This document shows, piece after piece, positions 4,060 to 57,560 of a stretch of DNA of 64,000 bases. The notes under the pieces are model-generated. The model worked only from the letters and a program-made list of their open reading frames with translations. It did no database searches and had not been told where the DNA came from. The DNA comes from Takakia lepidozioides (taxonomy: Eukaryota > Plantae > Bryophyta), in NCBI GenBank assembly GCA_030704615.1, contig CM060734.1, forward strand, positions 45,632,001 to 45,696,000. Direction: 5' to 3'. Within the stretch, counting starts at the first letter, position 1, and every line of letters starts with the position of its first letter. Position numbers and translations under genes: made by a program.

Positions 4060-4890
4060 ATCACATTTGACAATGTTGCCATGGACCTCTTTGCCCTTTT
4101 CCAGAGCTGATAGGCTTGCACACGCATTGCAAATGTACACAAACGTGATGTGGTTGGGCTTCACCCCTTCCCCCATCATTTGATCATAGGTCTCCAAAGC
4201 CTCCATACCACGTCCCTGCTGTGCATACCCTGCAAGTATCGCACTCCACGACACCACATCTCATTCAGCCATGGAAACTCCCTTCGCATCCTTAATGCAC
4301 CCACATTTGGCATACATGTCCACCAGGGTAGTGTTCAGAATGACATCTGGTACAATTCCAGCTTTGACAATGTCACCATGGACCTCTTTCCCCTTTCCCA
4401 GAGCTCCCAGGCTTGCACACGCATTGCATCCTGCCTACATTATATTCCACGTGACCAAAGATCGTTGAGGCATTCTGTTGAACACTTGGTGAGCATCAAT
4501 GATGCTCCCGCACATAACATACATGTTGACAAGGGTGTTGAGTAGAAAAACATTTGACGTGAATCCACTTTGGATGATGTGAGTATACACCTGTTTTCCA
4601 ACTTCCAGACCTTCCATCTTGATGCACTTAAGCAAGAGACAGACATACATATCTGAATCTGGTGAAATGCCTTGTGTTGTGGTTAGGCTTCATGCCTTCC
4701 CCCATCATTTGCTCATAGGTCTCCAAAGCCTCCATCTCGTGCCCCTATTGTGCATACCCTGCAAGTATCACGTTCCACGACACCACATCTCGTTCAGCCA
4801 TAGAGTTGAACACTGATCCCTTGGCATCCTTGATGCACCCACATTTGGCATACGTGTCCACCAGGGCAGGGGCAATGTTCAGAATGACAT
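4060..4890 (-). pseudogene. Second PLS-PPR relic, opposite orientation, rearranged
   Basis: Minus-strand ORFs 3922-4257 and 4435-4650 carry the same PPR motifs at high similarity to 1440-3100, in a different order. Confidence 0.85.
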
Positions 4891-5830: not shown

Positions 5831-6424
5831 TCGTAGACAGGTCATTGTCGTCGTCAATTTCTTTGAAACATGCCCCAAATGCCCAAAAATAACTGGCAGC
5901 GCGGGGAAGTGACGATAATGGCTTGAGTGCTGACGGGTGTCACTCACGGATCTCGGGTTTTTACAGATAACAAGGCAGTAAAGGGGTTGTGGTGAGGGCT
6001 GGAGTTGGCTGCTTGTAGGGCGTCGGGGCTGCGAGTTGGGGGACGAGCCGATCAAGGCCGGCTCACCGGCGTGGGGCCCACACTGTTGCACAGCGGCCGC
6101 TTAGCGCTGCTACCGCTGTCGCTACTGCCAACACCTCCACTAAGTTGGCGGCGCTGCAGGCCTTGCCGAGGTCTGGCGGCGACGCTGCTCATCGTACTTC
6201 TCGTGTCCACGCTCGTCACACTCAAAAAGCCCCGTTGTTCACCGAGGACAACTTCTTGAGAGAGAGAGAGGGAACAAGGCGACAGCGTACTTAGCGTGGA
6301 GAGGGGAAGAGGAGGAGGAGGAGAGAGAGACGGCAACAGCAGGGGCGGTGCTGGGGGTGCCTGGCATATCTTTTGGGAAGGCCTCCTAGTTGTGACTTGT
6401 GACAGAGATCAGCAGGGGAGCACT

Positions 6425-13062: not shown

Positions 13063-18828
<5,766 letters not shown>

Positions 18829-34500: not shown

Positions 34501-37500
34501 TTGGTGGAGTCTGGTCGTTGGGTGCCCATCTGTTCTACTCATGTTTCTTCTCTTGTCTTTGTTCCAGAAGCTCTCCGAGCTTCCCCTGGATGTTACGGAG
34601 GTTCTTTCTTGGTCCTCCATAAGGATAATTTTGCAGCCGAATTACCCGTCTGCAGCTCTATCTCCCTCTGTTCTAAGGGCATTTGGGAGGTTCAGGGTGG
34701 GCTCCCACCGTCTGCAAATAGAGATTGGTAGGTGGGACAACCTGCAACGTGAGGACCGCCTATACCCTGCTTGCGCTGGGAGCAACAGGGAAATCGAAAG
34801 TGAAGATCATTTCTTCTTTCGGTGCCCTTTCTATTGTGAGATCTGTGAGAGATTCAATTGTCTATTCCATGATACCCAATCTCTCAGGGAGGTCTCCTTG
34901 ACGAGGATCAGAAATGCTTGGCAGCTGGAAGAGGGCTAATCAGAGATTACCAAACAAACTTCCACGGGAAACGGATAGGGGGACCAAGGAGACAGCTCAC
35001 TGCATCTGCAATCCCATGAAGACACCTTCCTAATTAAGAAACAATCACATCATGATACCTTCCTTCCCCACTATGAAGTTGTCCACACCACTGACAAGGG
35101 CTTTTGACAACTTGCAAGTCGATTCTCACAGGATTGTATGGTCATAAACTAGCTCATAAGATAGGATGTCCAACTAATACCCCATCCCCACTACAAGATC
35201 AGGGAAAGATTTTGGTGTCTTCTGAGGGATTTCTTTGACCTGGCTCAAGTTAGGACCCAAAGTGAAATTGCAGAACCACCAATGATTGGTGATCTGGCAA
35301 CTCCTCCGGGGAATGGAGACGAGTTTGGGGGAGTGGGCACTGTGCATGGGTTCTATCTCTCTTCAATGTGTGGGGATTTAAGTTTTTCCTTAGTTTCTGT
35401 GTTGGTCCTCCTGGCATCCCAAGGACCTAATAAATGTGTACCTCTTCTTCCTCTTCATTTTTTCACACACAAACAAACATAATGATATAGCAATTTACAC
35501 AGCTCCACTTTCACTGTGTAAGGGGTTTTAGTGCACTCTTCTGTCTCCCTTCCTTCCCTGTAACTTGGGGTGCTGATCCTTCCCTCTTGAATTTATTATC
35601 TAGCTCTGACCCCTCCTCTCAGCCTGCTCAAGAGTCTATGGTTTGATGTAACAGTGAGGAGTGCGGAACTAAATGTAGCAGTTTATATTTGTGGGGGAAC
35701 CATGGAACAGGTGGGCAATTACATCCACAACATGGCAACATGTATTGGAGGCATTGCAATGGGGTTTATCAGCTGCTGGCAGATATCCCTGTTAATGCTG
35801 GGCACTGGACCCTTTATTGTTGCTGCAGGCATGGTGTCCAACCTCTTCCTTTCCCGCTTTGCTGAACATGTCCAAGAGTCCTATTCTCAAGCCGCGCGCA
35901 TTGCTGAGCAGGTTGGTGGATTCATCCTCATCTCATTCTGATGGCCTTAATTCTGAGCAGTATCAACTTGTGAAGATCTGATGCCATGTATTTTAAGATT
36001 TACAAAAGCTTTGCAGCGATGACAGTGACTGCTAAACATACGTGGCTACTGCTGCACTGTGATGTTCTCTTATGGCACGTCCTCTAGGAAGCCTATTGAC
36101 ATTGGGTGGACTTGAAACGGGAGTACATTAATGTCTCTGTGACTAAATGCCGGCCTTGTGACCTCGTGTCCTTGTTTGTTTCGACCTGAAGCGCTTTGCT
36201 TCAGGTAAGGTAGTGCATTGGATTTAGTTGGAAAGCTTGGGGCCTTTCCCTCTTTAGAATATGCCTACACGGGCCATTCCCTGCAACTCCCTGGAGTGTG
36301 ATCTCTGAATGGTAACAAGCGGACTCCTACCGCTTGGGGGCAGCCCCTCCGCCCAAATTGGGCAGTCGTATGCTCTGTCTAGCATACTCGGCACTTGGGC
36401 TCGGGTTGGTTCCTGTGCTGAAACTTATGGCCTGCGAAAACAATCAAAAATTTAGCTCCTATCAACATCAACACTCCTCAGGGTGATCCCTGGGAATTGG
36501 TTACTTATGCCAAATCTAGGGCTTCATGTGTAGTTTTTGGGGTGAATCCCAGGATGGACGATGTGTCCTTTAAAACTACATGCTCTAGCTTAGGCTTGGA
36601 TTTCATTTCTAATGGTACCATCTCGAGACTTGATAACAGGGGTACGTTGAAGGTTGCAATGACCTTTAGTGCTTCTAATAGAGTCCTGCATCAATTCAAT
36701 CTCAAAGAAGTTCGTCCCTTGACTGGCTGGAGAGCGGTCTTAGACTTTGGTGATTCAATGGGGCGCTCTAGGAAGACAACCAAGGGCAACAACTTCAACT
36801 TGAGAGTTTCTAATCAGTTTGATGCTCTGGATGAGGTTGAATCCAAACAGCCAGAAGGACAAGATGGCCCTAAGTGTACGGAACCTGAACGTCCTGAATC
36901 TGAAGGATTTGGTACTCTGAATGGCTTACCAATCCTCAAGGTTTACACAAGACAAACAAATTCTATACACGGGGTAATTGTCCCAAGCCGTCAGATGGAC
37001 AATCTGTCCCTAAGTGTGCAGAGCCTGAACGTCGTGTAACTGAAGGATTTGGTACTCTAAATGGTTTACCAATCCTCAAAGTCTACACAAGACGAGCAAA
37101 ATCTATACACGGGGTAATTGTCCCCAAGCAGTCTGACGGACAATCTGCCCCTATGTGTGTGGAGCCTGTGCGTCGTGTAACTGAAAGATTTGGTACCCTG
37201 AATGGTTTACCAATTCTCAAAGTTTACACAAGACGAGCAAAATCTACACATGGGGTAACTGTCCCCCCTTTGCAGAACGGTTGGCCGTCCAGGAGCAATC
37301 ACAAGCTACCTAGACGACAAACAATTCACACGCAAAGGGCTGGCTTGCGGCTGGCCACTTTCAACTTCTCAGGGTTGACCAACCAAAGGAACAACTTGAA
37401 GTGGGACAAGTTCTTCGGACTAATGATATTCATATCTGTGCTGGGCAAGAAACATGGGAAACGTCGGATAAACTGGTTGGAGATGTCATTGGTTATAAAT

Positions 37501-40500
37501 GGGCAGGTAAGATGTGTACTCTTAAGGCAGCCTCTGCCAAACGCGGTCAAAAAGGGTCGGATTCTTTGTCCGTGATTTCTTGTTTGACAATTGTGAAATT
37601 ATCAACAAGGGTTTGAGGTACGAGCATAGTATCTGGCTAAAACTGAATTTGAAGGGCGGCATGAGTACAAAGGACCTCTTTGTTGGTTGTGTTTACATGC
37701 CCACAGAGGGGACCCTTAGTGCTGACGCAGACAAGGCCTTCGAAGATGTAAAGCTGGACTGTGCTTCGTTCCTTGCCAAAGGTCAGGTGGTACTATTGGG
37801 GGACTTCAATGCCCGGGTGGGCAAAGGGATCCATCAGGACGATATCATTGGACCTTTTGGTGAGGACGAGCTGAATTCTAATGGCAGACGGTTAATTAAC
37901 TGTCTAGAAGAGCTTCAGCTTTTGACCTTGAATAACAGGACAAGAGGTGGCCAAGTGCAGTGGACTCGTGAGAAACCCCAAACTGGGGAACGTTCCATTG
38001 TGGACTATATCATAATGGACAAAATTTTGTTCCCCCAGTGTGCCAATGTGTTGATCGACAGAACTGATATTGGTACCTCTGACCACTTCCTGGTTTGGAC
38101 TGAGATCAAAAGGTGTTTTCCCACCACCAAGAGATCTGTGAAACGTTCGATTCGGAAGTTGCGCATAGAAAAATTCCACAATGAGGAGGTCAAGGCTGAG
38201 TACGTCCAGGCCTTGCAAGAGGCTCTCCCTCATTTTGTCCAATCGCTCCAAGAACTCCAGTCACGCTCTGTTAACGCAAGAAATGAAGTCGAAAGAGCAG
38301 TGGACTCTTGGGAGAGTTTCGTTTCCTCCGTGGCTGACAAGATCATTGGGAGGAAACTAATTGTCTGCGGTAGAGCAGTTAATTGGTGGACTACTGAGAT
38401 TAAACTCAAGATAGCTGAGAGACGAGCCCTCTATAAAGAGTGCTGCAATTTGGAAACCAACAGAGAATCGTGGGCGAGGTACTACCAGCTCCGTAAAGAT
38501 ATCAATCAGCTTGTTAGGTCTCAGAAGAAATTATACTGGGACAAGTTATACAGTGAAATAAACTCAAACCACCATGGTGGTAATGACAAGAAATTCTGGT
38601 TGGCCCTTCAACGTTTGTACAAACCGAAAAACGGTCAGCAAGTACAAGCGCTGAAGACTACTAAAGGTGCAGTGGTGACTTCATCGGTTGACATTGTCAA
38701 AACCTTTGAAACCCACTACAGTATCCTTGGCAGAACTTCTAGGTCTAACAATGAGGGGTCTTCTGCTGAATGGAGGGACACAGTTGGAAAAACTGTTCCT
38801 ATGATTCAAAACAGCCCTGATGAACTGGAGTATATTTCAATGGCTTATAATGCTCCCATTAGTTCTTCTGAGATTGTGGAAGCAATTGAACATTTAAATG
38901 GATATAAAGCTGGTGGACCTGATGGTATTGTCAACGAGCTTATCAAGCACGGTGGCGATCCCATGATAGAGGCCCTAGTTCTCCTCTTTAACCTTATCTG
39001 GAAGACTGAAATGATCCCCTTTCGCTGGCGACAGGGGGTCATTGTCAATCTATACAAGAAGGGTGACAGAGAAGAACCGGGGAACTACCGTGGCATCACG
39101 CTCCTCAATGCTGTTGGCAAGACATTCTGCAGAGTTATAAGTACTCGTCTCGAGGTTGATCTGGAGTCTAGAGGTTGTTTCCACGAAGGCCAAGCTGGCT
39201 TTCGGCGAAACAGGGGCTGTGTGGATCATATCTTCACTCTAAGCCAGATTATCCAGGGAAGGAAAAAAGAAGGGAAACCCACTTATGTCTTTTTCCTTGA
39301 TGTCAAAAAGGCTTATGACACAGTGTGGAGAGATGGCCTATGGTTCCGCCTCTGGTCTTGTGGGATCAAGGGAAAGATGTGGAGAGTTGTCCACAACTTG
39401 TATGCTCACACCAAAAGCTGTGTCACTGTTAACGGACAGAAGTCCAACTTCTTTGACATAGACCAAGGTGTAGCTCAAGGATGTACTCTCTCCCCTCTGC
39501 TCTTCAATGTTTCATCAATCAACTCCTCGAGGATGTGGAAAGTGAGGGATTTGGGTTAAGGGTGGGTGATACCACCATACCAGCCCTTATGTTTGCGGAT
39601 GACTTCGCAGGCATAGGGGAGACTCCAACCAATCTCCAGGAGTTGATTGATTGCGCGAAGAGATACTTTGATCTTTGGGGGCTAGAGGCTAATGTCAGCA
39701 AATGTGCAGTGGTAGCATCGACGACAGAGGAGAGGGAGGAAGTGATCTTAAGTGGCAGTGGGGTAGCCAAGAGATCCCGGTCCTCCCTTCCTACACTTAC
39801 CTGGGCGTTGAGTTCTCCTCCAATTGTAATTGGGATGCACATATCCGGAAAGTTGTTCAAACTGGCAAGGGCAAAGCTCTGGGGCTCACTAAATTTTTCC
39901 ACTGCAGAGGGGTCAACTCTGAGGTTAAGAAAACCATGCTTTGTCACGTTATTAGACCTGCCTTGGAGTACGGATCTGCTATATGGGTTGATAACTCCAA
40001 CCAGGCTAAGTCTCTAGAATCCATTCAAGTGGGGGTGCTTAAGGAGTGTATGTCAGCATGCTCCAAAACAGCCAATGTGGCTGTTCGGGGTGAGTTTGGC
40101 ATTCCGTCCTTAAGCTCCCGACGAGATGAATTCAAGGTCAGATGGTGGGGTCAGCTGCAACATATGCCCAACACCAGATATCCTAAATTAATCGACTCTA
40201 TATCTTGGAAACAGGACCGCCCTGTCAAACAGGCTAAGTCCTGGCAGAAGACAGTAGAAGAGATCCTCAAGGACCTGGACCTGGATCCGCAAGTCTTGAC
40301 CCTGCTGGATAAATCTGACTTAGAGGCTGTAGTGTCCTCAGCCATGTCTGTTGCCATGAGATTGTCTGATGAAAATGAAGTTAGGCAGAAAACTTCCCTG
40401 AACTTGTTTCAGTCTGTGACATGGGGGAGGACATCTTGTATGACCTCAAGGGTCTACCCACTCTCGGCACTAGACTGAAATTTAAACTCAGGGCAGGAAG

Positions 40501-43500
40501 CCTACCTTTGAACAGCAAACAGAAGCAGAGAGGAAAGGGAGAGTGCAATTGCCCGTTGTGTGGGCAATCTGAAGACAGTATTCATTTTCTGATACACTGT
40601 CCGGGGTTCTCTCACCAAAGAGACGCTCTCTTCAAATCTATTAAGGGAATTGTGCCTGTACCCCTGTTTACCAACTTTGAAAGTCTCGAGGCTGAGCCAA
40701 AAGCCCAGGCCCTCCTGAGGCCTAGTTTTTGGGCAAATCACACACAGCAGATTGATGCTTGTGTGAAGGGATTTCTAGAGGATATCTGGAAAACCCGGAT
40801 TAATTCTTTATATGGAGGTAAGTCTTACTACCAACGTCAGCCCCTGACAGAGGTAGGTTCTGTCCCTTTTGTTCCCGATCAAACTGGGCGCGGGGTCAAT
40901 GGCCACAAGGCTACGGCAAACAACGTCTTATGAGTACAATCTTATGGCATGTGGAATTGGTCAGAAAAATGTCTTGGTATATTCTTAGACATATGAAGTA
41001 TATTGTGACATTAGTGTCTCACATTTGTGCTATCTCGTTATAGGATTATGCAGCTTTATTGGAGTGTCTCGTCTCTTTGCAGAAAGATGCGTGCTATCAG
41101 CTTACTGTCACAGATTTGTGATCTCTGGAGGGTATGGCATGAGGTGTAGAGAACAGACAAGGGTGTGGTGTGAGATCCTTTGGATCAACCCATGACACAA
41201 TTTTTGATGGATTGCACCGCAGGCAATTTTGTACGTACGAACAGTATATGCGTTTGCCAATGAGACAATAGTAAAATATGCTTTCGCAAACGCACTCCAA
41301 TCTACTCTACGTTCCGGGATACAAATCAGTCTTGTCCAAGGGCTTGGACTGGGATTTGTTTATGGTATTGCCATCTGCTCATGTGCGCTGGGATTGTGGG
41401 TGGGGAGGTTTCTTATCACACATCACACAGCAAATGGTGGCCAGATTGTTATAGCGATATTTGCCATCATTCTCAGTGGCTTGTAAGCAATCCTATCCTG
41501 AAAGAGAGTAGTTATTTATTCCCCCTCTCCCCTTTCCCCTCACCCTTCTTTTCATACCCTCTTTCTCCCCTGAACGTTTCGTTCTTTCTTGTCTCAAATG
41601 TGGCGAGTTGAAAAGTTAAAAAGTTGGCTTTTTGCGTAGATTCAAGTCTCTGAAAGTCAAACTTATGTCGATTTCTTGATTGTGATAGAGGTTTAAACCA
41701 GGCGGCGACCAACTTTCAGGCTTTTGAGCAGGGGCGGATAGCAGCATATAGACTATTTCAAGTGGTAAATCGGAAGTCTCCATCAACTAATAGTGGAGCT
41801 ATTGGAGGGAACACTCTAACAGATGTACATGGCAACATAGAGCTTCGCAATGTCTACTTCAGCTATCCATCTTGCCCGGACGTACCTATATTAAGTGGGC
41901 TTTATCTTACTCTCCCTGCAAGAAAGACACTGGCACTTGCAGGAAGCAATGGTTCTGGAAAGAGCAGTGTCATTGCCCTTATAGAGCGCTTCTATGATCC
42001 AACACTCGGTGAGAGCATGATATTATTTCTGAACATGATTATTGTTCCCTTCTCCCCCTCCTCCAGATTCTCTTTTCTTCCTCTCTCTGTGTCTCTCTCT
42101 CTCACAGGCCAACGTCTTATTAGTACAATCTCTCTCTCACAGGCCCAAGGCCCTCATCCGGCTTACAATCTTTCTCCATAGATTACAGGCCCTTCCACCC
42201 AAGGGGCTCGTGGCAAGGGCCCTCGCAACATCTATGAGGCTCAAAGCTGCAGGTCTCATGAACTCCTGGTATGCTCGAGTGGACAGTTTATTCCAACGCA
42301 ACGGACTCTCTTCTGCTTCCCTATTACCAATGAATCCAGATGAGGTGGACATCACATCCAGACATGACCGTAACAGACTCATTAGGAGAGAGCTTATGGA
42401 ATTACATGTCAAGAGAACTTGGAAGCTACCCAATCTCACGACAAAGCTCCACTTCTATCGAGAGACATTCTGGGTGCTCCGAGATGATAGAATCTTGAGA
42501 CCAAATTACCTTTCAGCATCCTTATCTCCTTCCCTCCTGAGGGCAGTGGGGCGGTTCAGGGTGGGTTCCCACAACCTACGGATAGAGACTGGCAGATGGG
42601 AAAACCTGCAACAGGAGGACCGCCTATGTCCAGCTTGCATAGGGCGCAGCCAGGAAATTGAAACTGAAGAACACTTCTTCTTCTACTGCCCTCTATACTA
42701 CGAGATCCGTGGGAGATTCCACTGCTTATTCAGTGGAACCCAAACTCTCACTGATGTCTTCCACGATAAGGATCAAAAATGCTTGGCAGCCTACCTGCAC
42801 GAGGCCTTCACCCTTAGACAATCGCTAGAACATTAGTTCTTATTCTTGGGTTCTGGATTTGTTCCTCTCTCATGTTTTCTTCCATTTTGTCCCATAAGCT
42901 CTATGAGCTTTCTGCGGATGTTATAAAACACCATTTCATTTCATTTCTCTCACACACAAATATAGCCCTAACACGTACAATGCGATAGTGTCTGAATGAA
43001 GTTATCAAGCAGTACATCAATAACTGTATCTTGTGTGTTTAATATCTCACCATATTGCCCTCTTTCTGAATTACAGGTGAAGTACTTTTGGATGGAGAGA
43101 ATATTAGGAACCTTCGGGTGGAGTGGCTGAGGGACCAAATAGGGTTGGTGAGCCAAGAGCCAGCTCTCTTCGGTGGGAGTGTTCTCGAAAATATTCTCTA
43201 TGGTAGGGAAGCTACCATGGATGAGGTCGAGGAGGCTGCAAAAATAGCACATGCCCATACCTTTATCAGCTCCCTTCCAAATGGTTATGAATCGAAGGTA
43301 CTCGGCCAAGCAGTAGCTGGGTTCTCAGGTGGCTGGGAAGGGAAGAGAGGTGAAAGGAGAGAGAGAATTGGGGTGAGGATAAATGGACATCAATGACTGA
43401 AGGGCTGTGCATATATATATGCAGGAAGGCAGACGTTCAACATTAAACTAGTGGGAGATAGAGGTGATAGGAATAAGAAGTAGCAAGAGACTTGGAGGCA

Positions 43501-46500
43501 TTCTAACATCACCTTATACTTCTAGGATTGTAGCAGGAAGAAGCATGAAGTACTTAATCAATTTTGAATCTTGTTGGTGGTCAATTGGTAAGGTATTGAT
43601 GTTGTTCTAGGCAAGATGCAAGGGGTAGTTGAACCAGTGACACCTGCAACATGCTGTCTCCCATGTGCCATCTCCGTTGCCCCAAGCAAGATATGCGGAA
43701 ACAGATATCAGCTTTTCCCCCCTTAAGTTAAATTTCCACTCGATTTGTTTATAACTTTCTGGTAATGCAGGTAGGGGACAGCAGATTACTGTTTTCTGAA
43801 GAAAGGAAGTTGAAGATTGCGATAGCGCGAGCAGTGCTTAAGAACCCTCGTATTCTTTTACTTGATGAAGCCACCGGCAGCTTGGATGTAGAGGCTGCAC
43901 GGAGGGTGCAAGAGGCCCTTGACATCTTAATGTTGGGCAGATCGACAATAGTCATAGCCCATCGTCTGACAAGCGTTCGTAATGCGGATACGATTGCAGT
44001 TCTGGAGGAAGGACGGTTGGTGGAAATGGGAACCCATGATGAGCTGATGAGAATGGATGGGGCATATGCTGACCTAATTCGGTTGCAGGAAACAGCAAAG
44101 CCACCAAGAAGGTGATTTTCCATCCATGGCTTTGACAAATCCAGCCAGACCACCACTTGGCTGCTAGAATAGATGCGAATTGGGCTCTCGCGGGGCACAT
44201 GTCTGGGGGTTGAATCCTTTGAGAACTTGATGTTTATGCATCATTCATGAAATCCCTGTGCATAATGAAGTCTGGTGAAAAGGCTATGACAAGGTAACCT
44301 CTGGAAGGAAATGTGCTACATTCCTTCTTGTCACCTTTTGATACTGGGCAGGAGATACGTACAGCTGCATTTCTCTTCCTCACCTTCGTGATGCTTGGAG
44401 ATTACTTTTGGCTCTCTCTTACCTGCTGTTGACGACCTGCTTATTTGATGTCTTTATGCATGCAGGGCCCCTCCCAGGATGTTTGTATACCCTCCACCGC
44501 AAGAGAGTGTGTCCCCAAGCTACAGTAAGCCACCATCACCAAAAATGATAAAGTCACCTTCTCTGAAAAGACAAAATGCTGGTCGTGGATTGTCTAACTT
44601 TGAGCTCCTCAATGATTCGCCACCCCTTTTGACTAGCCCCCCTGCTGTCCAGAATCCTCCCTTAAATGGAGGTGGATTGGAAATGCAAGATATGAAGTCT
44701 GAGATGCGTGTAAAGCGACAGGACAGCTTCGAGAAGGCATACCTTGACTCTCTGCCCCAAATTGACATACATCGACAACGGCAGTTGTCAAATTCAGATA
44801 TTTCTGATCCAGAGTCCCCAGTCTCCCCTTTCTTGACTTCAGACCCACTGCACGAGCGATCCCATTCGAAGAGCTTCAGGAGATCCTTCTCTCAGATTGT
44901 TGAAATCCATCAGCAGGCAGATGAAGAGAAAATTGTCACACCATCACTCTGGAGACTAGCGAAGCTCAGCGCACCTGAGTGGTTTTGTGCGCTGTTGGGT
45001 AGCTTTGGGGCTGCTCTCTTTGGATCTTTCAGCCCACTGTTTGCATTCTTATTGGCCCTAGTGGCAGAAGTTTACTATTCTCCGGATGCAAGGGCCATGC
45101 GACGGGAGGTAGACAAGTATTGCTTGCGAGTGGCTGCAATGGGGTTGGCTACCGTTGCTGTCAACTTCTTGCAACACTTTTATTTTGGAATCCTCGGTGA
45201 GAAGATGACTGAGCGTGTGCGCCGACTCATGTTTTCAGGTAGTTTTGCACCAAATAACATTTTGCAATGCTTCATTCTCTCACTGTCTGGTGGCCTGACA
45301 GAGTCTCTTCCTGAACTTTGTTTTACCCCAGTCTGGAAATACTTTTGTTTTTGGCTAAAAGATGACCCAGAAGAGTTGCCACGGTGCTTCCGTAGCATTT
45401 GTGAGACTCTATAACAAGCAGCATACATAATTTCTCAGCAGCCAAATTTAAGCACAAGAATAACTACACCATGCCACTCACAGGCAAGAAAATATTATAT
45501 ATGAGCTTGAGGTTAGCTTATCATAGAAGTGTTTCAATGTCTTTCTATCTGGCATTATGTAGACTTTCTTTGAAATTCTGTTCCCCCTCGAGGCTTTTCT
45601 TTTCTGGCCTCCCCCTGAGGAGTATGCTACAACTTAGCTTGGATTTTCATTATACGGACACTGTCATTTTGCCTTTTCAGCAATTCTTCGGAATGAAGTT
45701 GGCTGGTTTGATAAGGAGGAAAACTGTGCCGAGCTATTGTCTATACGATTGGCCAACGATGCAACATATGTAAGGGCTGCATTCAGCAACCGGTTATCAA
45801 TCATCATCCAGGACATAACGGCTTTAATGGTGGCACTATCCTTAGCTCTGATTATGCAATGGCACCTTGGCCTGGTTGCCTTGATCACCATCCCTTTACT
45901 CGCCTTTGCTTCCATGATGCAGGTTTGTTCACCACTCAGCTTCATGACATTGGTGCAGTGGATATTTGATTTTTCTCATATCTTTTGTTTGGGATGAGTA
46001 TGTCCACTGGGCCCTGGCTGAAGTAACATTGATATCAGTGCAGGAAAGTTATATCTTTTCTCTATTGCTTTAGTTTGGCTTTGCTTCTTGTTACTATCAT
46101 TGTACTTACTTCTGGTACAACACATGGCTTAACCATGTGAGCCGTCTCATGTGCCTTAAACTGTTGGTAAAACCGTACAGCTTTTCGGTTTGTGGTTTTC
46201 TTTCTTGGCAGGAAGAGGCATTCTGATAACAGTCCTTTCCATAGGCCTTCTGGTCACGCACTCATATTGGGAAAAGAGAAAGAGATACAAACAATTGGCA
46301 TTTGAATGGAGAGGGCATGGTAAATGTTCCCTAGCATGGTCATAGTAGTATTCAGGTGACATACAATGATTTTTTTTTGCAGCATTTGTGGAACACAGGA
46401 TTCTCAGGAGATATGAGGGAGGCACACAAAAGCGCAAGACTGGTTTTGGAAGAAGCAGTAGCCAATATGCACACTGTGATGTCATTTTCGGGTGGCCTTA

Positions 46501-48395
46501 AAGTGCTAGACCTTTACCGCCAGGAGCTAAAAAAACCTCTAAGACGAAGCCTGAGAAGGGGCCAACTCTGTGGGTGCGCATTTGGTGCATCTCAGTTTGC
46601 ACTCTTTGGATGCAATGCTCTCCTGCTCTGGTATGGATCGGTAGTTCTCAGGAAACAGCCACATGCAAGTTTTCCCAACTTTCTGAGAGCTTTTCTAGTG
46701 TTGACATTCACAGCATTTACTCTGGTTGAAGCCTTTGGGCTAGGACCTCTGGTAGTGAAGCGGCGAAAGTTAGTCACACCAGTGTTCACCATCATTGACC
46801 GGCAGTCACAGATGGAGGCTGAGGAGGAAGGCTTACAACCTCCATATGTTGCAGGCCAAATTGAGTTTCAAAATGTGGACTTCAGGTATGAATTGCACAT
46901 TACTCAAAGCATATCATCAAACTTTGGAAGAGACAGAATCTACTTATTGACTGCTTCTTGGAAACTCTGGATGCTAAATGGTGGAGCCGGTTGTGGGGTC
47001 TCAGCCCACCCCCTTCCCTTCATCAAACACTGAAAAGCTAGATTTGTACTGGCCTTCAGATTACTCACTTGGAAGGACCCTTCCTTAGTGGTGTTACTAA
47101 TCTGAATTGCAGTCTCCACTTCTCTATGAAAATAAGAAAGGACTTCATAACATCCATCCATGGGTGGCCCCCAGAGCCCATGGCACAAAGTAGAGAAAAA
47201 GACAGCCCACCAGAGGCCGAAGGGACATGTAGAACAAGACAGTAGCACCGCAGAAAACAAAAATAACGTAACTCAAAGCTTAAGTGTTGATCAAAGGCAG
47301 TGTTCCCCATGCAGGTAAGGTACTTAAGTGCTGCCAGGAGAAATGACTGTCTAGAAAGACTGGTATCTGGGTGAGAGAAAGAAAGTGGTCTCTGGGGTGG
47401 GTCAGGGGAGCATGAGGCTCTACAAGTACATGGACTGGTTTAAGCCTGGTCATGAAGGAACTGATTCATCTTAAATGCTTTTATGAGTCTATAGGCTCCC
47501 TTCATAGATCTGTCCATTGCACGGAACTATGCATCTGGCCTTTCAAGTTGTTTCTTGCTTTGATGAGGACTATCTTATGTTGGCCGAGCTAAGCTTTGTT
47601 TAGTTCCTTTATGCACCAAGGGCTTGGGAAGTTGTTCTTATTTTCTCTACTGTCTTTTTATATTGTAGGTACCCAACCCAGCCGGATATTTCCATATTCG
47701 TGAACCTCAGTTTGAAAGTAGAGGCAGGGCAGACGGTAGCAGTTGTTGGATCAACAGGCTCTGGCAAGAGCACGGTCCTTGCTCTCCTTGAACGATTTTA
47801 CAAGCCTGAGAAGGGACGAATATTGATCGACGGGAGGGACGTGAAGACTCTCAATCTTCAATGGCTTCGCAATCACATTGGCCTTGTTCAGCAGGAACCA
47901 GTACTTTTTTTGTCGTCCATTCGAGATAATATTGTATATGGACGGCTTAATGCGACAGAGGCTGAAATCACTGAAGCTTCGAGAATTGCCAATGCACATC
48001 ATTTTATTAGCAGTTTACCACACGGTTACGACACCCATATTGGGATGTCTGGTTTGCAATTAAGCATAGGCCAGCGCCTCCGAATCGCAATAGCGCGTGC
48101 AGTTCTGAAGAATGCACCAATCCTTCTCCTTGATGAGCCTTCTACAGCATTAGAGGCCGAGTCTAACAGGGTCGTCCAAGAATCTGTGGAGCAGCTCATT
48201 ATGGGGAATAGAACCACTGTTGTAGTCACACACAAACTACAGTTACTAAGGCGTGTTGACATGGTGGCAGTCTTGCATGATGGACAGATTGTGGAAGAAG
48301 GCAGTCATGATGAGTTGATGAACAAGTGTGGGCCGTATGCACGGTTGATGCAGCCACAGTTTGCTAGATCTTTCAGACAGCGACAATCTCAATGA
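31548..48395 (+). CDS. ABCB20: Full-size ABCB (P-glycoprotein) transporter, ABCB6/ABCB20 clade; exons 31548-31679, 32694-32969, 33150-33204, 33449-33624, 35711-35911, 41223-41482, 41689-42008, 43077-43297, 43771-44111, 44466-45238, 45681-45922, 46383-46885, 47669-48395
   Basis: Clade-typical N-terminus [25 protein letters not shown] and linker [19 protein letters not shown]. Two TMD-NBD halves with Walker A GSNGSGKS / GSTGSGKS and Walker B LLLDE. All introns GT-AG. Confidence 0.93.
32047..32465 (+). repeat. Diverged tandem duplication (~190-230-bp units) in ABCB intron 1
   Basis: Both units begin GTAAGCTAG and share GAGCATTGT.CC.CTTACCTCCATCC. Confidence 0.65.
34380..35140 (+). mobile_element. 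Older diverged fragments of LINE family B in ABCB intron 4
   Basis: [19 protein letters not shown]-like..[10 protein letters not shown] at 34640-34927 is homologous to 42500-42790. Confidence 0.75.
36078..40939 (+). mobile_element. Full-length non-LTR retrotransposon (family A, RTE-X-like) in ABCB intron 5
   Basis: TSD TCTTATGGCA at 36068-36077 and 40940-40949. APE motifs (LATFN, QETW, GDFNAR, IVDYI, SDH), RT motifs ([30 protein letters not shown]) and a C-terminal CPLC..ED..HFL..C finger. The clade assignment is inference. Confidence 0.95.
36857..37266 (+). repeat. Three 141-bp (47-aa) tandem coding repeats inside LINE A
   Basis: Units start at 36857, 36997 and 37138; each encodes [15 protein letters not shown]. 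Confidence 0.92.
42111..42128 (+). mobile_element. 18-nt 3'-tip insertion of LINE family A with 17-bp TSD
   Basis: AACGTCTTATTAGTACAA (17/18 to 40922-40939) lies between two copies of TCTCTCTCTCACAGGCC (42094-42110 and 42129-42145). Confidence 0.88.
42142..42945 (+). mobile_element. 5'-truncated LINE family B with (CATTT)3 tail and 9-bp TSD
   Basis: Open frame [42 protein letters not shown] at 42133-42141 and 42946-42954. Confidence 0.88.
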
Positions 48396-49196
48396 TCGAC
48401 TAGAGCTTTCAAATTCTTTTTTTCATGCGTTGCCACACATGTATGGATATAGGGACTGCGCGTGCCAGTCTTCAGGGTGCTAGAACCCTCAAAGTCTCAG
48501 TATTCTCAGGATTAGGAAAGGTGAGGGTTACGCCTGCACTACAAATTCTGCAGTTGATTTAGCCATTGTATATTTGAATAATGGAATGAGGTGAGCAGCC
48601 AACCTGGGATACGATATGCCCATGGGACTCCGGGAAAAATGGTTGAATGCTGATAATCTGTTGTGATCCAAGTTATTCTATTTTTGGAACAATGTCGTTC
48701 TGTGTGTTCCGAAATTTTCCATCTGCCTTTCAATGAAGCCTTGGATTTCAATGCGAAAAACCTCGCACCAAGCAAAAGCTGGTTAGTGAATTTCTCTCTC
48801 CAATTCTCATTGCAGTCTTTCTGCATGTACACCTCTGCCAGTACACTCCTGACTTATTCAGGACGGGCCTGACTGTTTTGTTTCTTAGTCAATCTACAAT
48901 GTTTAATGTCCAAGAGTCTATTGCTTAAGACAGCCCATTGGAAGGCCAATGGACGATTGAAGGATTCAAAATTGAACCCGGGAAATTCTTCTGGAACAAG
49001 TATGGCACCCAAGATGAACACAGAAAAGAGAGCAAGGGAGGGAGAGAGGAAGGAAAGGAAGGTTTCCTAAAGAATGTGGGGCCCTCAACAAGCAGCCCAA
49101 AAATAGCTATTCAACGTCAGAGATCCTCTAAGGTGGACGGCCGTGAACACATGCTGCCAAGCATTTCTGGTCCTAGTAGAGGTAGAGCTAAAAGAA

Positions 49197-50515
49197 TGTA
49201 CTCATAAGACGTTTGGCATAGCCTTGTGGCCACTGACCCCGCGCCCAGTTTGAGCGGAACACAAAGGGACGGAAACTACGAGGGTCAAGCCTTGTGGACT
49301 TAGATTCAGATCCTTGAAAATCTCTGCTACCCTCTTCTGCCAGGACTTGGTCTGTTTGACAGGGCGATCCTGCTTCCAAGATATAGAGTCGATTAACTTA
49401 GGATATCTGAAATCAGTCATACGTTGCAGCTGACCCCACCATCTGACCTTGAATTCATCTAGTTGGTGTTTTGGAGCATGCTCACATGCACTCCTTGAGC
49501 CGGTGAAAGGGGATCATTTCAGTCCTCCAGGAGAAGTACAATGGCCTCTAGCATGGGGTCGCCACCATGCTTGATAAGCTCATTGACTATGCCATCAGGT
49601 CCACCACTGGTCCACCAGCTTTATATCCGTTGAAATGCTCAATTGCTTCCACAATCTCAGAAGACTAATGGAGGCGTTGTAACCCTTTGAAATATACTCC
49701 AGTTCAGTCTTGGATCATAGGAACGGTTTTTTCAACTATCCTTCCATTCTTCAGAAGACCCCTCACTGTTAGCTAGACCTAGAATTTTAGTAGTCCTCAG
49801 CGCTTGTACTTGCTGACAATTGTTAGGCTTGTACAGACGTTGAAGAGGGCCAACCAGAATCTCTTTGTCGTTACCAGTGCCGTGGTCTTGTCCCAATATA
49901 ATTTCTTCTGAGACCTTACAAGCTGATTGATATCCTTGCAGATCTGGTAGTACCTAGCCCACAATTCTTTGTTGACTTCAAATTGCAGCACTCTTTATAG
50001 AGGACTAGTCTCTCTATCTTGAGTTTGATCTCATTGGTCCATCTCTACCGCAGACAATGAGTTTCCTCCCCAATGATCTTGTCAACCACAGATGAGACGA
50101 AACCCTCCCAAGAATTCACCGCTATTTCGACTTCATGTCTAGACCTCAGAGAAAAGGACGGTAAGAAAGAATGTACTCATAAGACTCTTTTGCCGTAGCC
50201 TTGTGGCCATAGACCCCGCGTCCAGTGTGACGGAAAGATAGGGAATAGACACTATCTCTGTGAGGGGCTCAGACTTACCCTTGATAAAGACAATTAGTTC
50301 GGGATTTCCAGATATCCTCTAGAAAGCCCTTCACACAAGCATCAATCTGCTGAGCAGCCCAAAAGTCAGACCCCAAGAGGGCCAGGGCTTTAGGCTCAGC
50401 CTTGAGATTGTCGTTGGTGAACAGAGGTGTAGGAACCATGTTCTTGATGTCCAGGAGAGGGTTGATGTCCACTCTCTGGTGAGAATACCCGGACAATGTA
50501 TCAGAAAATGGATAT
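49197..50515 (-). mobile_element. Two decayed, internally deleted LINE family A copies
   Basis: 3' tips at about 49197 and 50170. Blocks match 40860-40939, 40040-40300, 38830-39020, 38280-38810 and 40580-40939. Confidence 0.85.
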
Positions 50516-51183
50516 TGGAGAGAGAGACAGAGTACTACCTGTAGCAAAATGGCTTCTTAACCTTGCAGACGCCCATGCAAAGGTGCCAGTAGAAAACCCA
50601 GCAAAAAATGTGCCAAGTCATTCGCCTTGCAAGCTGCATCTCATGCTGCACCATGTACCATAGATCAGCCTTGCAAAATTGTGGTGAGCATCCAGACAAT
50701 CCAGAGATCTAGCAGGTGGGTAATCTCGCGGATGTCTGAAGGCCAGAGGACCTTCAGAGGTAGCATTGCTGTGTGGAGGATGAATGAACGAGCAATCCTC
50801 CAGACAAACCTGTCATCCCTGCCAAGGATAACTGCCACGATCGACAAACTCTGCTCTCAAGAAGCTCCGTGCAAGCAAGAGAGGATCATCTTCTGCACTG
50901 CACAATCCAAGTGGGCCTCGAATTTGTTTGAGAGAAACGTGTTGTGCAAAACACCCTGTAGCCGCAAAGTGTTTGCCTTGTCGAACTTGTCCTTCCGTTC
51001 GAGGTGAGCCTGTTCCAGGCGTGTTAATGCCCTTCATCGTAATGGCCTTAAGGAAAGGCATGATGGGCTAAGTGCAAACTGTGCAAAATTGTCCGACGTC
51101 TGTTTGTGTGTGAGACGGAGAGAGAATTACCCCGTGCCTCACGCAGTACATGAGAGATTTCATGGGTATGGGACGTGTGAGAG

Positions 51184-51992: not shown

Positions 51993-52225
51993 ATATGATA
52001 CAATTGTCTTATTTTGTAATTGAGCTTGAATTGATGAAATCTGTGCAGTTGCCCAAAATTCTGATGATGGAGGTGGGAACAACAGGAGCTGAACCAGTAT
52101 AATAAGCGTTTCACTCGAGTCTTTCAAAGTCGCCGTCTCTGCGAGGTTCCGTTACAACCAACACACAAAAATGACGACGATGACGTGGCTGAGATGACGT
52201 GGTACTATGTGGCCAACTTGAAGAG

Positions 52226-52937
52226 AATATCCACTTTCTCATTCATTGTCACTCTCACCGGAGAGACCCTCTTCACATCCTTCAAGGGAATTGATCCTAT
52301 ACCTTTGTTTATCAACTTTGAAAATCTTGAGGCTGAGCCAACAGCCGAGGCCCTTTTGGGGTCTAGTTATTGGGCAAATCACACACAGCAGATTGATGTT
52401 CGTGTGAAGGGATTTCTAGAGTAGATATCTGGAAAACTCGGATCAATTGTCTATTCCAAGGTAAGTCATACTACTGGCATCAGCCCCTGACAAAGGCAAT
52501 TTCTGTCCCTGTGTGTTCCGCTCAAACTGGGCGCGGGTTCGATGGCCACAAGGCTACGGCAAACAATGTCTCATAAATACATTCTCTTTCCCCTACTCTC
52601 TTTCCCCATTGTCCAGGGTAATCTCACCAGAGAGTGACCCTCTTCGGGAACATCAAGAACATGGTCCTTTACCCCTGTTCAACAACTTGCACAATATCAA
52701 GGCTGAGCCTAAAGCCCTGGCCCTGGTCCTGTTGGGGCTGCTCACACAACAGATCGATGCTTATGTGAGGGCTTTCTAGAGGATATCTGGAAAGTCCAAA
52801 CTAACTGTTTATATCAAGGATAAGTCGCACTACTGGAGTGTGCCTTTCACAAAGGTAGTGTCTATTCCCTCTGTTTCCATCCAAACTGGGCGCGGGATCT
52901 ATGGTCACATATGGTAAGCGAAGTCTTATGAGTACAT
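52226..52937 (+). mobile_element. Two tandem decayed 3' fragments of LINE family A
   Basis: About 52226-52581 and 52605-52937 each align to 40580-40939 and end before TTCTCTTTCC. Confidence 0.8.
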
Positions 52938-53338: not shown

Positions 53339-54487
53339 TCAAATGCCAGTAATTCTGATTTCTGGTCTAAAGACTACGTACAGATCACCGCACCATCTTG
53401 CAAGCCGCTGACAATATTTGTCCTCGCCGGAATAAATTGCAAAGAAGTCGCGCAATAGCTTATCAGGAACTTCCGGCAACTGCCTCCATTCTCGAGTGGA
53501 GACATTCAATTCCCATAAACATGGAGTGCTCCACCCAACAACACCCAAAGCACTCCCAGCTACCACCTTGCGGCCCTGCCTTACAAAGAACATAACTTCT
53601 CACTGGAAACGATCGGGCATATGTGTCCTAATCTCCGTCCAAACTCCGGTGCCAATGTCGTAAGCAAACAACTGGTGGAAGGCAATGTACCATGGGATGG
53701 AACGGCAATCCAAACAGTAGATCATGACATACATGACGTTGCCAAATTTGGCAGTGCCTGTTGTCTTATAATGTCGCCCAGGACATTGCTTACCTAGCGT
53801 CATGTTTCTCGTCTCATTCCACGAGTTGGAGATGGAGTCGTAGACCAAAATTCTATGCATTTCAACTCCTTCGGTAGACTCTACTACAACCCTAATAAGC
53901 TTGTATCCTCCGGTACTGCTATCCATCACCAATTCATTCAGAAAACAACCATCGCTATTTTCTGGCGCTTTAGGTAAGCGTCTGCCACACTTTGAGATCG
54001 GATTGAACACGATGATGTACAAATCCCCAGGTATTGACTTCACTTCGATGGAAAACAACCCTCCATCTGTAGATACGGTGTAACCGCAACGTGATGTTGG
54101 CATATCTTTTGTGCAAGGTCTAAGGAATGTGAGGTCTATCTGGTGCCCGTTGCACATGCCACTTGCAGATGGATATAGAAACTCCATACGTCCTATGTTC
54201 TTTGCACCACCTACACCTAGAGTCAGGCCCCCCATATGAAAGATGAAGAATGGCTCTATATGATCGAGACCGACCTGGTTGTGGAGATGCAGAAAACCCG
54301 GAGTTGCTAGCAGGGATCGCCATCGCTTGCACACCATCAATAAGCGGCAAAGATTTCTGCAAGATAAGCATGCCAACACTCTGTCCAGTAAGTCGCACAG
54401 GAGCCTACTCCACACCTCACTATCCATAACCGTTGGTGGCTCAAGAGAGAGAGCGCCCAAGTAGCCACAATCCTTGAGTGGAGGCAT
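53339..54487 (-). pseudogene. Intronless F-box (kelch/FBA-like) gene with one in-frame TGA at 53600-53602
   Basis: MDSEVWSRLLCDLLDRVLACL..VCKRWRSL F-box, VFNPISK..RRLP and VYDS..NSW. The same frame continues past the stop to 53339. Confidence 0.8.
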
Positions 54488-55499
54488 CCTCACAGCCTTC
54501 CTGTCACGAACCTCTTTTCTACTCGAGACTTCAAGACTTTGTCCGATGGCCACAACTGTCAGTCGCCACCACAAACTCGCAATTTGTGAAGGAAGCAAGT
54601 GGGAGTCTAGAGACCTGCGCGCTTAAATGTATGTAAGGATACAAGACCCAAACTTGGGTTTGCATAAATATAGCACTTGGTTGTTACTAAGTTCGACACA
54701 CACTTTTATTGGTGTTGACGTAGACCAAATTTAACCCCGGCCTTGTTACTTAAAGATAAAGATAAAGTTTCTTTAACGTCCAGTGAAAGCCAATCTAGTT
54801 TGGGTTTTAGGTCTGCCATAAAAATCTTGGGTTGTAGACCAGGCTGATCAGAACAAAAAAGGATGAGCAGTATTACAGGTTTGCGTACTAGGCTTAACAT
54901 GAATTTATCTTTGTAGGATACCCAAAGTCTTTGACTGGGACATGCGAAGCTATAGTACATCAAAAGCCCCCTTTGTGGGCAGTGCCGGCTGAGTGAGAGC
55001 TTTTGGACATGAATATAGACAAAGGAGATACCTCTTCCGTCATCCATAAGCACCACCAACTAATTTGATGTTAGGCTATAGGCGCTACATGTTTCTGTTG
55101 ACATGGCGTCCGCTGCGTTGGCCGAATCCCACGTGGACATGTGGACTGCCACGTAGGCATGTTGATTGCCACATCATGTTGTTCACTGCCATGTCAGCAT
55201 GCTCATGCCACATCACCCTCACGCTCACGCCACATCAGCTGCTGGTCCCCTACGCTCGCGCCATGTCAGCATAGCGTGAGCGCACGCTCACGCTCATGCT
55301 CACGTTCACGCGGTAGCGTCGTTGATGTAGAACCTTGATAATTCATTGCTCGGAACGGTGATTTAGGAATGGGAGCTTTAAAATTAGTGTTTCATGGAAA
55401 ATGAGTCCTAGTGGATTTGTGAGTCATGAGAACCAGCATTGAAAACATCAAGATTGTCACAAATAACATGATATAGACGAGACATTTCATTTTCAGTGA

Positions 55500-57560
55500 G
55501 ACTAGAGCCCATTTTGATATCAGTCAAGACCTAGTCAAGATGAACAGATTGCGCAGGAGTGAGGGAACTGACCTTGGGTGCAGCCACAGATTGTGCCAAG
55601 AGATGCAATTGATCTACAGGATCATCAGACAGGCCAATGTCAGCAAAACTTAAAGCATGTTGCACCTCTCCTAAATCTGTCAATGGGGTGGCAGTGAGTC
55701 GTGCGAGGACCTGACCCTTGCGGATGGTGATAGGTATGCGTTCTGGGTTGGCAACAAGAAGTCTGAGCTCCCCTCGAAAGCCCCGATCCAGCACCCCAGA
55801 TGCAATCAAACAATGTTTGAAAAGCATCAATCGTTTCCACCCCTTGACTTCAAGATAACGACCTTGTGGACAAAAAAAAGTGAGGCCAAGAAAAACAATC
55901 CTTTGGGGGGAGGCAGGTATAACAAACTCAATGGGATTGCGAAGAAGTAGTGTTACCTGGGATTGGAATGGGAGGGCCACTCTTCTTACCAGGCAAAGTG
56001 GTTGCCACTAATACAAGGTGGAAGGAGCCGTCTTGGCAAAGTTAAAGTAACGTATCCAGTTGTATTGCTCACCAGCCTGCCGTCTTGTTTCAGCAACAAT
56101 GGTTCGCATGTGGGAGAGATGCGCAGTGGCACAACCAGCGGGCAAGGAGACAGAGTTGAGCTGCACCTTGTGGGGGGAGGAGCTGCCACTGGCAAGCCAC
56201 ATGATGTTTTCAACCACATCAATCTTGGCCCCTACAGCACACATCCAATCCAAGCCTAACAACAACTGCTCACCAATGGTAACGATACAAGTCAGTGTGA
56301 CCGACTTGCAACTGACCTTAATAGGGATGGTGACCAAACTTGGGGGTTCATAACGTGTGCCATCTGCAATGGTCACCTGCAGACCTGTGGCTGGAGTGAG
56401 TTTGAGACCAAGTAGTCGAACCACGGACAACGGAACAGCAGACATGGTACAGCCTGTGTCAACAACACATGAAAACGATAGGTGCCCTATGTGACATTGA
56501 GTCATGAGAGGGTGCACTTTTTCCCTCCTAAGATTTTTATTGGCTTCACAATGCATTAATTTGAATTCATTGGACAACATCACAAAAACAATGGAGTCAT
56601 CATTTGCAGGGTTTGTGGGATATTGACCGCTTGGCCCCTTCACAAGCGATCTGGTTCGTTTAAAGGGTGTTTGCCCCTCTGCTCGCGTTGAATTCGTTTG
56701 TGTTCTTCAATCATACCAGGGACAAAAGCGGCATAGGTGCAGAAGCGAGTCCAGTGCTCAAGTGACCCACAAATGAAACATGCCACACGTTTACCTTGAA
56801 CCTCATATCGTGGGCCAGTCTGAGTGTGGCCACGATGAGAATCAGTAGGAGGAGGCTTGGCAGGTGCGGCCCTCCAGGATCCTTCTGCCCTGACAGCCTG
56901 AAGCTGAGTATGCAGCTCTTGTTATAAGGTTTTAACCTCCTCCAGTAATGTAGGAGAGGCCTCTGTAGAGCCACCCTTAACCATGGCAACCCCATGAGAA
57001 CATTTGGAAGTATGTTGATGAGCATAATGAACAACACGCAGACAACTTTTGCCTAATTTAGCATTCTTAAACCTCATGCGCTCATCCATCATCTCTACCA
57101 TATGCCTCTCATTGCGATAAGGATGCTTCTGTAGGTAGACTTGATTAGAGGCAGGTAATCCCGGTAATGAAGTAGGTTTTAAGTATGGCAGTGCGTTCAA
57201 AAGGTACCGGAATGGCCTTGACCACCATAGTTTTCAAGTCAGTGTAATATTTCTAGATACTCTCACCAGGTTGATAAGGACGATCGGGCATGGGGTAGTT
57301 GATGGGCGTGTCTGCACGAAACAACTGAAGTGCCAACTGCTTGGCCACTCCTCATCGCTTCTAACTGACACTGAGCTTAACACGTACAAAGAAACTCCTG
57401 CTAGTCATTTTGAGTCGATTTTTGCCAGCATCGTGCGTGCTTCGGTTGATCCTAGCCTGGTGGTTGAAGTTGATTATCCGTCTCTTGGTGCTACAGTTGA
57501 ACGCATCTTGAACGCCCTGAATTGGTCCTCGACACGCCTTCTGATCACTGGGTGGCTCAG
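55500..57560 (-). mobile_element. Ty3/gypsy-type relic: gag, zinc knuckle, aspartic protease, dUTPase-like domain; RT/RNase H/integrase absent
   Basis: QPGESI*KYYTDL capsid motif (~57260), CFICGSLEHWTRFC knuckle (56739-56780), VVDTGC..LLLGLDW protease, GVLDRGFRGE..N..IRKGQVLARL. No LTR pair found. Confidence 0.85.

Follow-up and report, generated by a model that had tools for sequence, protein, structure and literature searches.

The DNA analysed here is a stretch of 64,000 nucleotides (nt) from the bryophyte Takakia lepidozioides (assembly GCA_030704615.1, contig CM060734.1, positions 45,632,001 to 45,696,000 of the forward strand), referred to below as the window. It contains a full-length, frame-broken long interspersed nuclear element (LINE) at 36078-40939, which an earlier note on the same DNA had described as a tail-less element with a single open reading frame (ORF). 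Our reading, to which we assign a probability of about 0.7, is that this LINE carries a recognition structure embedded in its coding sequence and a one-unit UCU tail that is hidden in the target site duplication (TSD). The 4862-nt copy was delimited and annotated from its TSD bounds, its ORF pieces, Pfam matches and a self-blast, and has the following features.

36068-36077, no strand: left copy of the perfect 10-bp TSD TCTTATGGCA, a direct repeat flanking the LINE
36078-40939, + strand: full-length, frame-broken LINE copy
36554-36842, + strand: N-terminal domain of the single ORF, with the ATG at 36554 as the probable start codon, from three-frame translation
36843-37266, + strand: three 141-bp (47-codon) units in tandem, lying between the N-terminal domain and the endonuclease
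37340-38100, + strand: apurinic/apyrimidinic (APE)-type endonuclease domain (PF14529, E 1.5e-6), with frameshifts near its start
39059-39720, + strand: reverse transcriptase (RT) domain (PF00078, E 9.5e-22 and 3.9e-6), split by a frameshift near 39500
40544-40600, + strand: C-terminal Cys/His (CCHC-type) motif, kept in the consensus of the relatives
40931-40933, + strand: stop codon TGA, part of a conserved TGAGTA
40934-40939, + strand: terminal 6 nt GTACAA (GTACAT in most copies)
40940-40949, no strand: right copy of the 10-bp TSD TCTTATGGCA, the TCT at its start being proposed as one-unit tail and microhomology

This reference copy is dead, with at least five frame breaks, and its last ORF piece (40421-40933) ends at the TGA stop codon. 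The 141-bp repeats are in frame with the downstream endonuclease apart from one 1-nt indel. The N-terminal part, the three repeats of 47 amino acids (aa) and the APE domain were once one continuous frame, and the element is a single-ORF LINE, as the earlier note had claimed. A separate ORF1 was considered and rejected, since the N-terminal domain is fused in frame with the endonuclease. The apparent ORF1 of L002, one of the metagenomic relatives described below, was likewise rejected, as it consists of the N-terminus and the start of the APE domain severed by a frameshift. In the relatives L045 and L003, the N-terminus, APE and RT lie in one frame. The APE domain is N-terminal to the RT domain throughout, as judged by PF14529 and PF00078 on the window ORF pieces and by PF03372, PF14529 and PF00078 in the relatives. 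The N-terminal domain at 36554-36842 had no Pfam match; it shares an N-x-F-D/E-x-L motif with L002, although the tblastx match is weak. The 47-aa repeat was not seen in L002 or L045. Self-blast of the copy at 36078-40939 revealed no terminal repeats of the long terminal repeat (LTR) kind, and the sole self-match was the internal 141-bp array.

One 3' end shared by ten copies

Ten copies in the window share one 3' end point, as found by blastn, a covariance model and a 10-mer search. Eight were found by blastn or the covariance model, and two ultra-short copies (42111 and ~14789) were identified separately. The 10-mer used in the copy search occurred 12 times at no more than one mismatch compared to 3.8 occurrences expected, and none of 100 shuffles reached 12. 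The ten copies comprise the full-length copy, five fragments of 330-940 nt, two of ~40 nt and two of ~20 nt, and those other than the full-length copy are listed here.

14342-14381, + strand: 40-nt 5'-truncated copy with a 14-bp TSD TCTTTCTCTCACTA
14789-14809, - strand: ultra-short copy of ~21 nt with approximate boundaries, lying in a CT tract
14968-15006, - strand: ~38-nt 5'-truncated copy with a 12-bp TSD CTCTATGTCTCT
42111-42128, + strand: 18-nt ultra-short copy ending in ACAA, with a 17-bp TSD starting TCTCTC
49196-50140, - strand: copy with internal deletions, truncated at about position 2200 of the element
50171-50517, - strand: 3' fragment (element positions 4499-4862), ~30 nt upstream of the 49196-50140 copy
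52208-52582, + strand: 3' fragment with its stop mutated to TAA
52607-52937, + strand: diverged 3' fragment inserted 25 nt behind the 52208-52582 copy, with TSD TCTCTTTCC
63556-63905, - strand: 3' fragment that, with 63323-63527, duplicates the composite at 49.2-50.5 kb

In the reference copy, the end fixed by the perfect 10-bp TSD lies 6 nt (GTACAA) past the TGA at 40931-40933 and carries no tail, exactly as the earlier note had it. Its count of about ten copies ending at the same point in A or T also held: seven copies have T as their last base and two have A (the reference and the copy at 42111), and one copy has a 1-nt deletion. No poly(A) or tandem-repeat tail follows the 3' end in any of the ten window copies. 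AT-rich tri-, tetra- or pentamer repeats of a 3' untranslated region (UTR) were found in 0 of the 10, which carry no more than a single TCT unit that is also part of the target. The copies are characterised by 5' truncation, a common 3' end, lengths of 18-4862 nt and TSDs of variable length (6-17 bp). The earlier note had further concluded that the RNA has a precisely defined 3' end. The 3' junction is indeed exact in all copies, but the fixed feature is the start site of cDNA synthesis and not necessarily the end of the RNA.

Not all of these copies are independent. The regions 49196-50517 and 63323-63905 have the same composite structure, namely a LINE 3' fragment, a TC-rich spacer of ~30 nt and a second copy truncated near position 2200. 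Both composites share their upstream flank and reflect either segmental duplication or membership of a larger repeat. Because the composite is duplicated, the copies at 50.2 kb and 63.6 kb count as one event. The 18-nt copy at 42111-42128 and its 17-bp TSDs sit in a (TC)n tract (window positions 42094-42145).

Every readable TSD in the window family starts with TCT, or with CTCT in one case. Since TCT accounts for only 2.15% of window positions, its occurrence at the TSD starts is far from chance. In the five clearest cases, C precedes the upstream TSD copy, giving a target of TC^TCT, and the T or A that follows ACA therefore belongs to the element. The constraint on position -1 suggests that endonuclease specificity probably contributes to the choice of target.

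Relatives and class assignment

A word-based protein search with the APE-RT piece returned unnamed proteins from ENA metagenome assemblies, with 43-45% protein identity to the window element (60% in the RT core for one of them). Five loci from different samples were compared (L001, L002, L039, L043, which has two copies, and L045); a further locus, L042, lacks the 3' end. The called ORF of these relatives (for L002, the local frame) ends at TGA-GTA, or at TGA-GAT in the second L043 copy. Directly after TGA-GTA stand only short AT-rich repeats of two to five units, namely (TTA)2, (TTA)3, T(ATT)5 or TTTATTA. The 3' UTR is 6 nt long in the window family and consists of 3 nt plus the tail in the relatives. 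As the relatives share TGA-GTA near their ends, a stop codon placed a few nucleotides from the end is a trait of the lineage. The TSD of L002 (15 bp) starts with TTA and that of L043 (16 bp) with TTTA, both of which correspond to the tail units. L045 is flanked by a repeat of at least 52 nt (~75 nt with mismatches) that starts with TTATTAA (435-510 and 6526-6600).

The close relatives came only from ENA contigs reached by look-up of identical proteins. A scan of JGI metagenomes yielded 36 loci, nearly all of them distant LINEs, at 20-33% identity, whose 3' UTRs are ordinary or whose tails are of other kinds. One distant relative (31% identity), present as copies L040 (3988-4074) and L041 (3863-3948), has ORF1 and ORF2 and an identical 3' UTR of ~50 nt in both copies. 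One copy has a (TGTA)n tail and the other a (TA)n tail, so tail units can vary between copies of one family.

By its architecture, the element has the design of the RTE class, with an almost absent 3' UTR, and the window family is an extreme form of this design with 6 nt and no tail array. In the passage of Malik & Eickbush (1998) quoted in PMC1291365, the RTE class is described as having unusually short 3' UTRs composed of AT-rich tri-, tetra- or pentamer repeats. The earlier note had suggested an unusual priming or 3'-processing mechanism. None is required, as the relatives share TGA-GTA followed by AT-rich units, which is this published hallmark. The note had also raised the prospect that the closest described family might already have this architecture, which is largely the case. 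We therefore regard the element as an extreme form of a known design rather than a new mechanism. Like RTE-1 of C. elegans, BovB and the schistosome elements SR2 and SR3, it encodes an N-terminal APE domain and RT in a single long ORF and has an unusually short 3' UTR, AT-rich trinucleotide repeats directly after the stop in its relatives, and 5'-truncated copies with TSDs. Unlike them, the window family has no repeat array, its 6 nt after the stop being followed by target, and it possesses a ~250-aa N-terminal extension with the 47-aa repeats as well as the C-terminal Cys/His motif. Canonical RTE elements are not known to carry such a C-terminal motif.

A further comparison is with RTEX. In green algae, the terminal units of RTEX families are (CA)n, (CAA)n, (CCAT)n, (ACAATG)n or (CTTGTAA)n (PMC3747384), LINE/RTE-X has been reported in the liverwort Marchantia (bioRxiv 10.1101/827881), and an ORF1 protein has been attributed to RTEX (PMC3905857). 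The window lineage resembles RTEX in belonging to the green lineage and in a non-poly(A) end with short-unit tails, but lacks a tail array and has a single ORF, which may set it apart.

The family might instead lie outside the RTE group, as a microsatellite-targeting member of another clade such as the Tx1/L1 group. The fish elements Kibi and Koshi, which are APE-type LINEs targeting (TC)n and (TTC)n, respectively (PMC3812793), offer a precedent, since the window family also inserts into TC tracts as Kibi does. The C-terminal Cys/His motif and the best match among solved structures, L1 ORF2p (E 6e-32), are two further hints in this direction. However, one long ORF, near-zero UTR and AT-rich trimer tails in the relatives fit the description of the RTE class, and the protein search for relatives returned no Tx1-named match. 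The sole clade-informative named match was a CFDP2/p97bcnt-type protein, the endonuclease part of which derives from RTE. We thus consider a non-RTE affiliation improbable. The likeness to Kibi and Koshi is that of APE-type LINEs inserting into TC-type microsatellites; they differ in host kingdom and probably in clade, and the window target is a minimal TC^TCT rather than necessarily a long array.

A paired domain in the coding end

Two stem-loops can be drawn in the coding sequence just upstream of the stop codon.

40876-40890, + strand: SL1, a 6-bp stem-loop within the coding sequence, with one A.G mismatch in the worn reference copy
40895-40917, + strand: SL2, the hairpin of the earlier note at 40900-40913 (5 bp, 4-nt loop) with a 3-bp outer extension, all coding

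Together they constitute a two-stem RNA domain within the last ~20 codons (~65 nt), a region that aligns well across 11-12 sequences from six families. The earlier note had proposed the hairpin at 40900-40913 as an RT-recognition signal inside coding sequence. The hairpin is coding and forms the core of the SL1/SL2 domain; that a protein recognises it is something we only infer.

Pairs were counted on two alignments, and an initial MAFFT alignment in which the SL1 arms were out of register between families was excluded. In the MAFFT alignment A3 (11 sequences), 94% of pair cells were paired compared to 24-47% for slid partners, three of 14 pairs had changes on both sides, and the covariation score was 0.222 against 0.149 for shuffled alignments. 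In the model-fitted alignment A6 (12 sequences), 95% of 164 pair cells were paired compared to 23-48% for slid partners, and the score was 0.252 against 0.154. None of 500 shuffles reached the observed score in either case. Changes on both sides occurred at four of the 14 pairs in A6, and the earlier note's hairpin is kept through compensatory changes in distant relatives. The four are SL1 pair 6/21 (G:C to A:U), SL1 pair 7/20 (C:G to U:A), the outer SL2 pair 27/49 (G:C to A:U, with A:U in one copy) and the inner SL2 pair 36/41, which is C:G, G:C or A:U depending on the family. The shuffle control overstates the significance of these scores, because the structure comes from the same sequences and the window copies are related. 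In L043, the sequence of SL1 is quite different, but it occupies the same place and still pairs (CGUC-GAAA-GACG in one copy and CAUC-AAUC-GAUG in the second).

Conservation of this region could reflect selection on the C-terminal peptide G-x-G-V-N/D-G-x-x-A-x-A only, with the hairpins being incidental. The peptide motif is recognisably kept between the window family and its relatives, and the fold energies are unremarkable. Several features of the RNA speak against such an explanation. The third positions of the GTC, GGC and GCT codons, including four-fold degenerate ones, are invariant across families whose proteins are only ~45% identical. The inner SL2 pair joins the first base of one loop codon to the last base of the next, and these two codons encode HK, VS, DS, GD, RN or SG depending on the family, while their outer bases covary and the pairing is kept. 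The wholly different SL1 sequence of L043 (CGUC/GACG, CAUC/GAUG) also still pairs. We therefore consider selection on the peptide only to be very unlikely. Between window subfamilies, identity is 83-89% over the block that lies 22-67 nt from the end, compared to 52-67% in the coding sequence upstream. Collectively, the covarying pairs, the fixed third positions and the conserved terminal block argue for selection acting on the RNA of the coding end and not only on the peptide.

A closing helix (P0) is tentatively suggested by the alignments, in which GYUC 5' of SL1 could pair with GAGU of the conserved UGAGUA. P0 is 88% paired, short and rich in G.U pairs.

The retention of a 3' stem-loop through compensatory changes is as in 3'-end recognition of the stringent type. 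Like the stringent-type LINEs (eel UnaL2, zebrafish L2 and R2), the window family has a conserved stem-loop near its 3' end and exact initiation, and the pairing proposed below would correspond to that of short repeat units with the nicked target in those elements. It differs in that its structure lies wholly within the ORF rather than in a 3' UTR. No partner short interspersed nuclear element (SINE) sharing the LINE 3' end was found in the 64-kb window, where the covariance model matched LINE copies only.

A dedicated processing step, by a ribozyme or a host RNase, could also generate a precise RNA end, and the exact 3' junctions in 10 of 10 copies would fit it. However, Rfam searches of 35900-41100 (E up to 1) and of the whole window (gathering scores) gave nothing relevant, whether a ribozyme (HDV-like or otherwise), the UnaL2 3' element or a tRNA-like end. 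Moreover, what follows the junction is target DNA and varies from copy to copy, so no conserved processing signal is possible there, and the variable tail lengths of the relatives are typical of priming or slippage, not of cleavage. Such a step is extremely unlikely.

How the element might define template and target

In the mechanism that we propose, the last ~65 nt of the RNA, corresponding to the last ~20 codons, would fold into SL1 and SL2, and UGAGUA at the stop may close them. The element's own protein would bind this domain, as in stringent 3' recognition, and cDNA synthesis would start at a fixed point ~22 nt downstream of SL2. The endonuclease would nick the bottom strand at 5'-AGA^GA, equivalent to TC^TCT on the top strand, and the exposed AGA-3' end could then pair with a single UCU that follows GUACAU in a template running past the element. 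A transcript running past the element would carry UCU, because every genomic copy is followed by TCT. The resulting one-unit tail would be identical to the target, regenerated at each insertion and hidden in the TSD, giving the element its tail-less appearance. Since the TSDs of the relatives begin with their tail unit and those of the window family with TCT, the comparison suggests that the element probably keeps a one-unit tail indistinguishable from the target. An RNA ending 6 nt past its stop codon without poly(A) would presumably be a poor messenger, which favours longer transcripts with internal initiation.

The pairing of a nicked target with read-through sequence has a counterpart in the site-specific elements. 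In R1Bm and R2Bm, the nicked target reportedly pairs with target-derived read-through sequence downstream of the element, which is the same idea as proposed here. The window family and R1/R2-type elements both have precise, tail-less junctions; the window family differs in that its target is a motif of 3-5 nt scattered through the genome rather than a unique rDNA site, and in that it is APE-type and belongs to a different clade.

Alternatively, the endonuclease alone could select TC^TCT, with RT starting at a true RNA end at GUACAU without base pairing, in which case the element would be truly tail-less. R2 can start reverse transcription at the 3' end of an RNA without base pairing. The base at target position -1 is C in most events, which makes the motif wider than the 3 nt able to pair, and no copy has an extra TCT unit before its TSD. 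On the other hand, the TSDs of the relatives begin with the tail unit, pointing to pairing across the lineage, and a transcript with its end so close to the stop would probably serve poorly as mRNA. We regard this alternative as fairly unlikely.

Several observations weigh against the coding-embedded structure with a hidden UCU tail. Given the C at target position -1, endonuclease specificity could by itself account for TC^TCT. Minimum free energy folds of single sequences are no better than those of shuffled sequences (z +1.1 to -1.4). The structure was derived from the same sequences on which it was scored, the window copies are related, and independent compensatory events number ~5. The repeat flanking L045 was not used as a TSD because it is too long, and it represents either a TSD of unusual length or insertion of the element into repeated DNA. 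To these are added the Cys/His motif and the L1 ORF2p match described above, as hints against RTE.

A more elaborate version of the proposal joins these elements together. The template-recognition RNA domain would be merged with the end of the ORF as a three-way junction of SL1, SL2 and a stop-containing closing helix, and a ribosome terminating at UGA would release the new protein onto its binding site, giving cis-preference. Distance from SL2 would fix where the cDNA begins, and a single read-through unit would select the target triplet through pairing, such that replacement of UUA by UCU would have moved the family's insertions from AT-rich sites to TC tracts. Taken as a whole, this version is unlikely.

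What is new here is the covarying two-stem domain within an ORF, the conservation of the TGA-GTA end across relatives, and the match between the tail unit and the TSD start, which would account for the apparent lack of a tail. The element thus offers a compact natural case of the way in which template and target may be defined by a LINE that lacks poly(A), with a module of ~65 nt that is coding and shows visible covariation. In sister families, the tail unit is TTA or TCT, and the first bases of the TSD change with it. This contrast makes testable the long-held idea that the 3' unit of the RNA helps to choose the insertion site in RTE- and L2-type elements. For annotation, the proposal would explain why fragments of 18-40 nt from a very abundant plant family are left in CT-rich tracts, and why its copies pile up behind one another.

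Two further LINEs show features that resemble parts of this design. L003 (5140-5250), a JGI metagenome LINE of 31% identity, has a single 1652-aa ORF whose stop lies 13 nt before a (TC)n run, and a perfect 8-bp hairpin in its coding end ~50 nt before the stop. Judged from this one copy, whose end is undefined, L003 may be an independent case of the same design. L012 (5263-5320), a GC-rich LINE with 33% identity in RT, has an SL2-like GCC-loop-GGCTACGG motif after its stop, followed by (GTCAA)3. Both L012 and L003 fell short of E 1 with the covariance model and were left out of the count, and a weak match of the model to L026 (E 0.035) looks like chance and was rejected.

The remaining gene content of the window is typical of a plant. 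It comprises pentatricopeptide (PPR) repeats, a 2-oxoglutarate (2OG)-dioxygenase N-terminal domain (DIOX_N), ABC-transporter exons (ABC_membrane, ABC_tran) and an F-box ORF, together with a gag-type aspartyl protease fragment from an LTR element. Jointly, these non-LINE genes occupy 2034-2729, 6296-6976, 44479-48395, 53600-54598 (- strand) and 56008-56643 (- strand). Several of the LINE fragments lie just downstream of the ABC-transporter exons.

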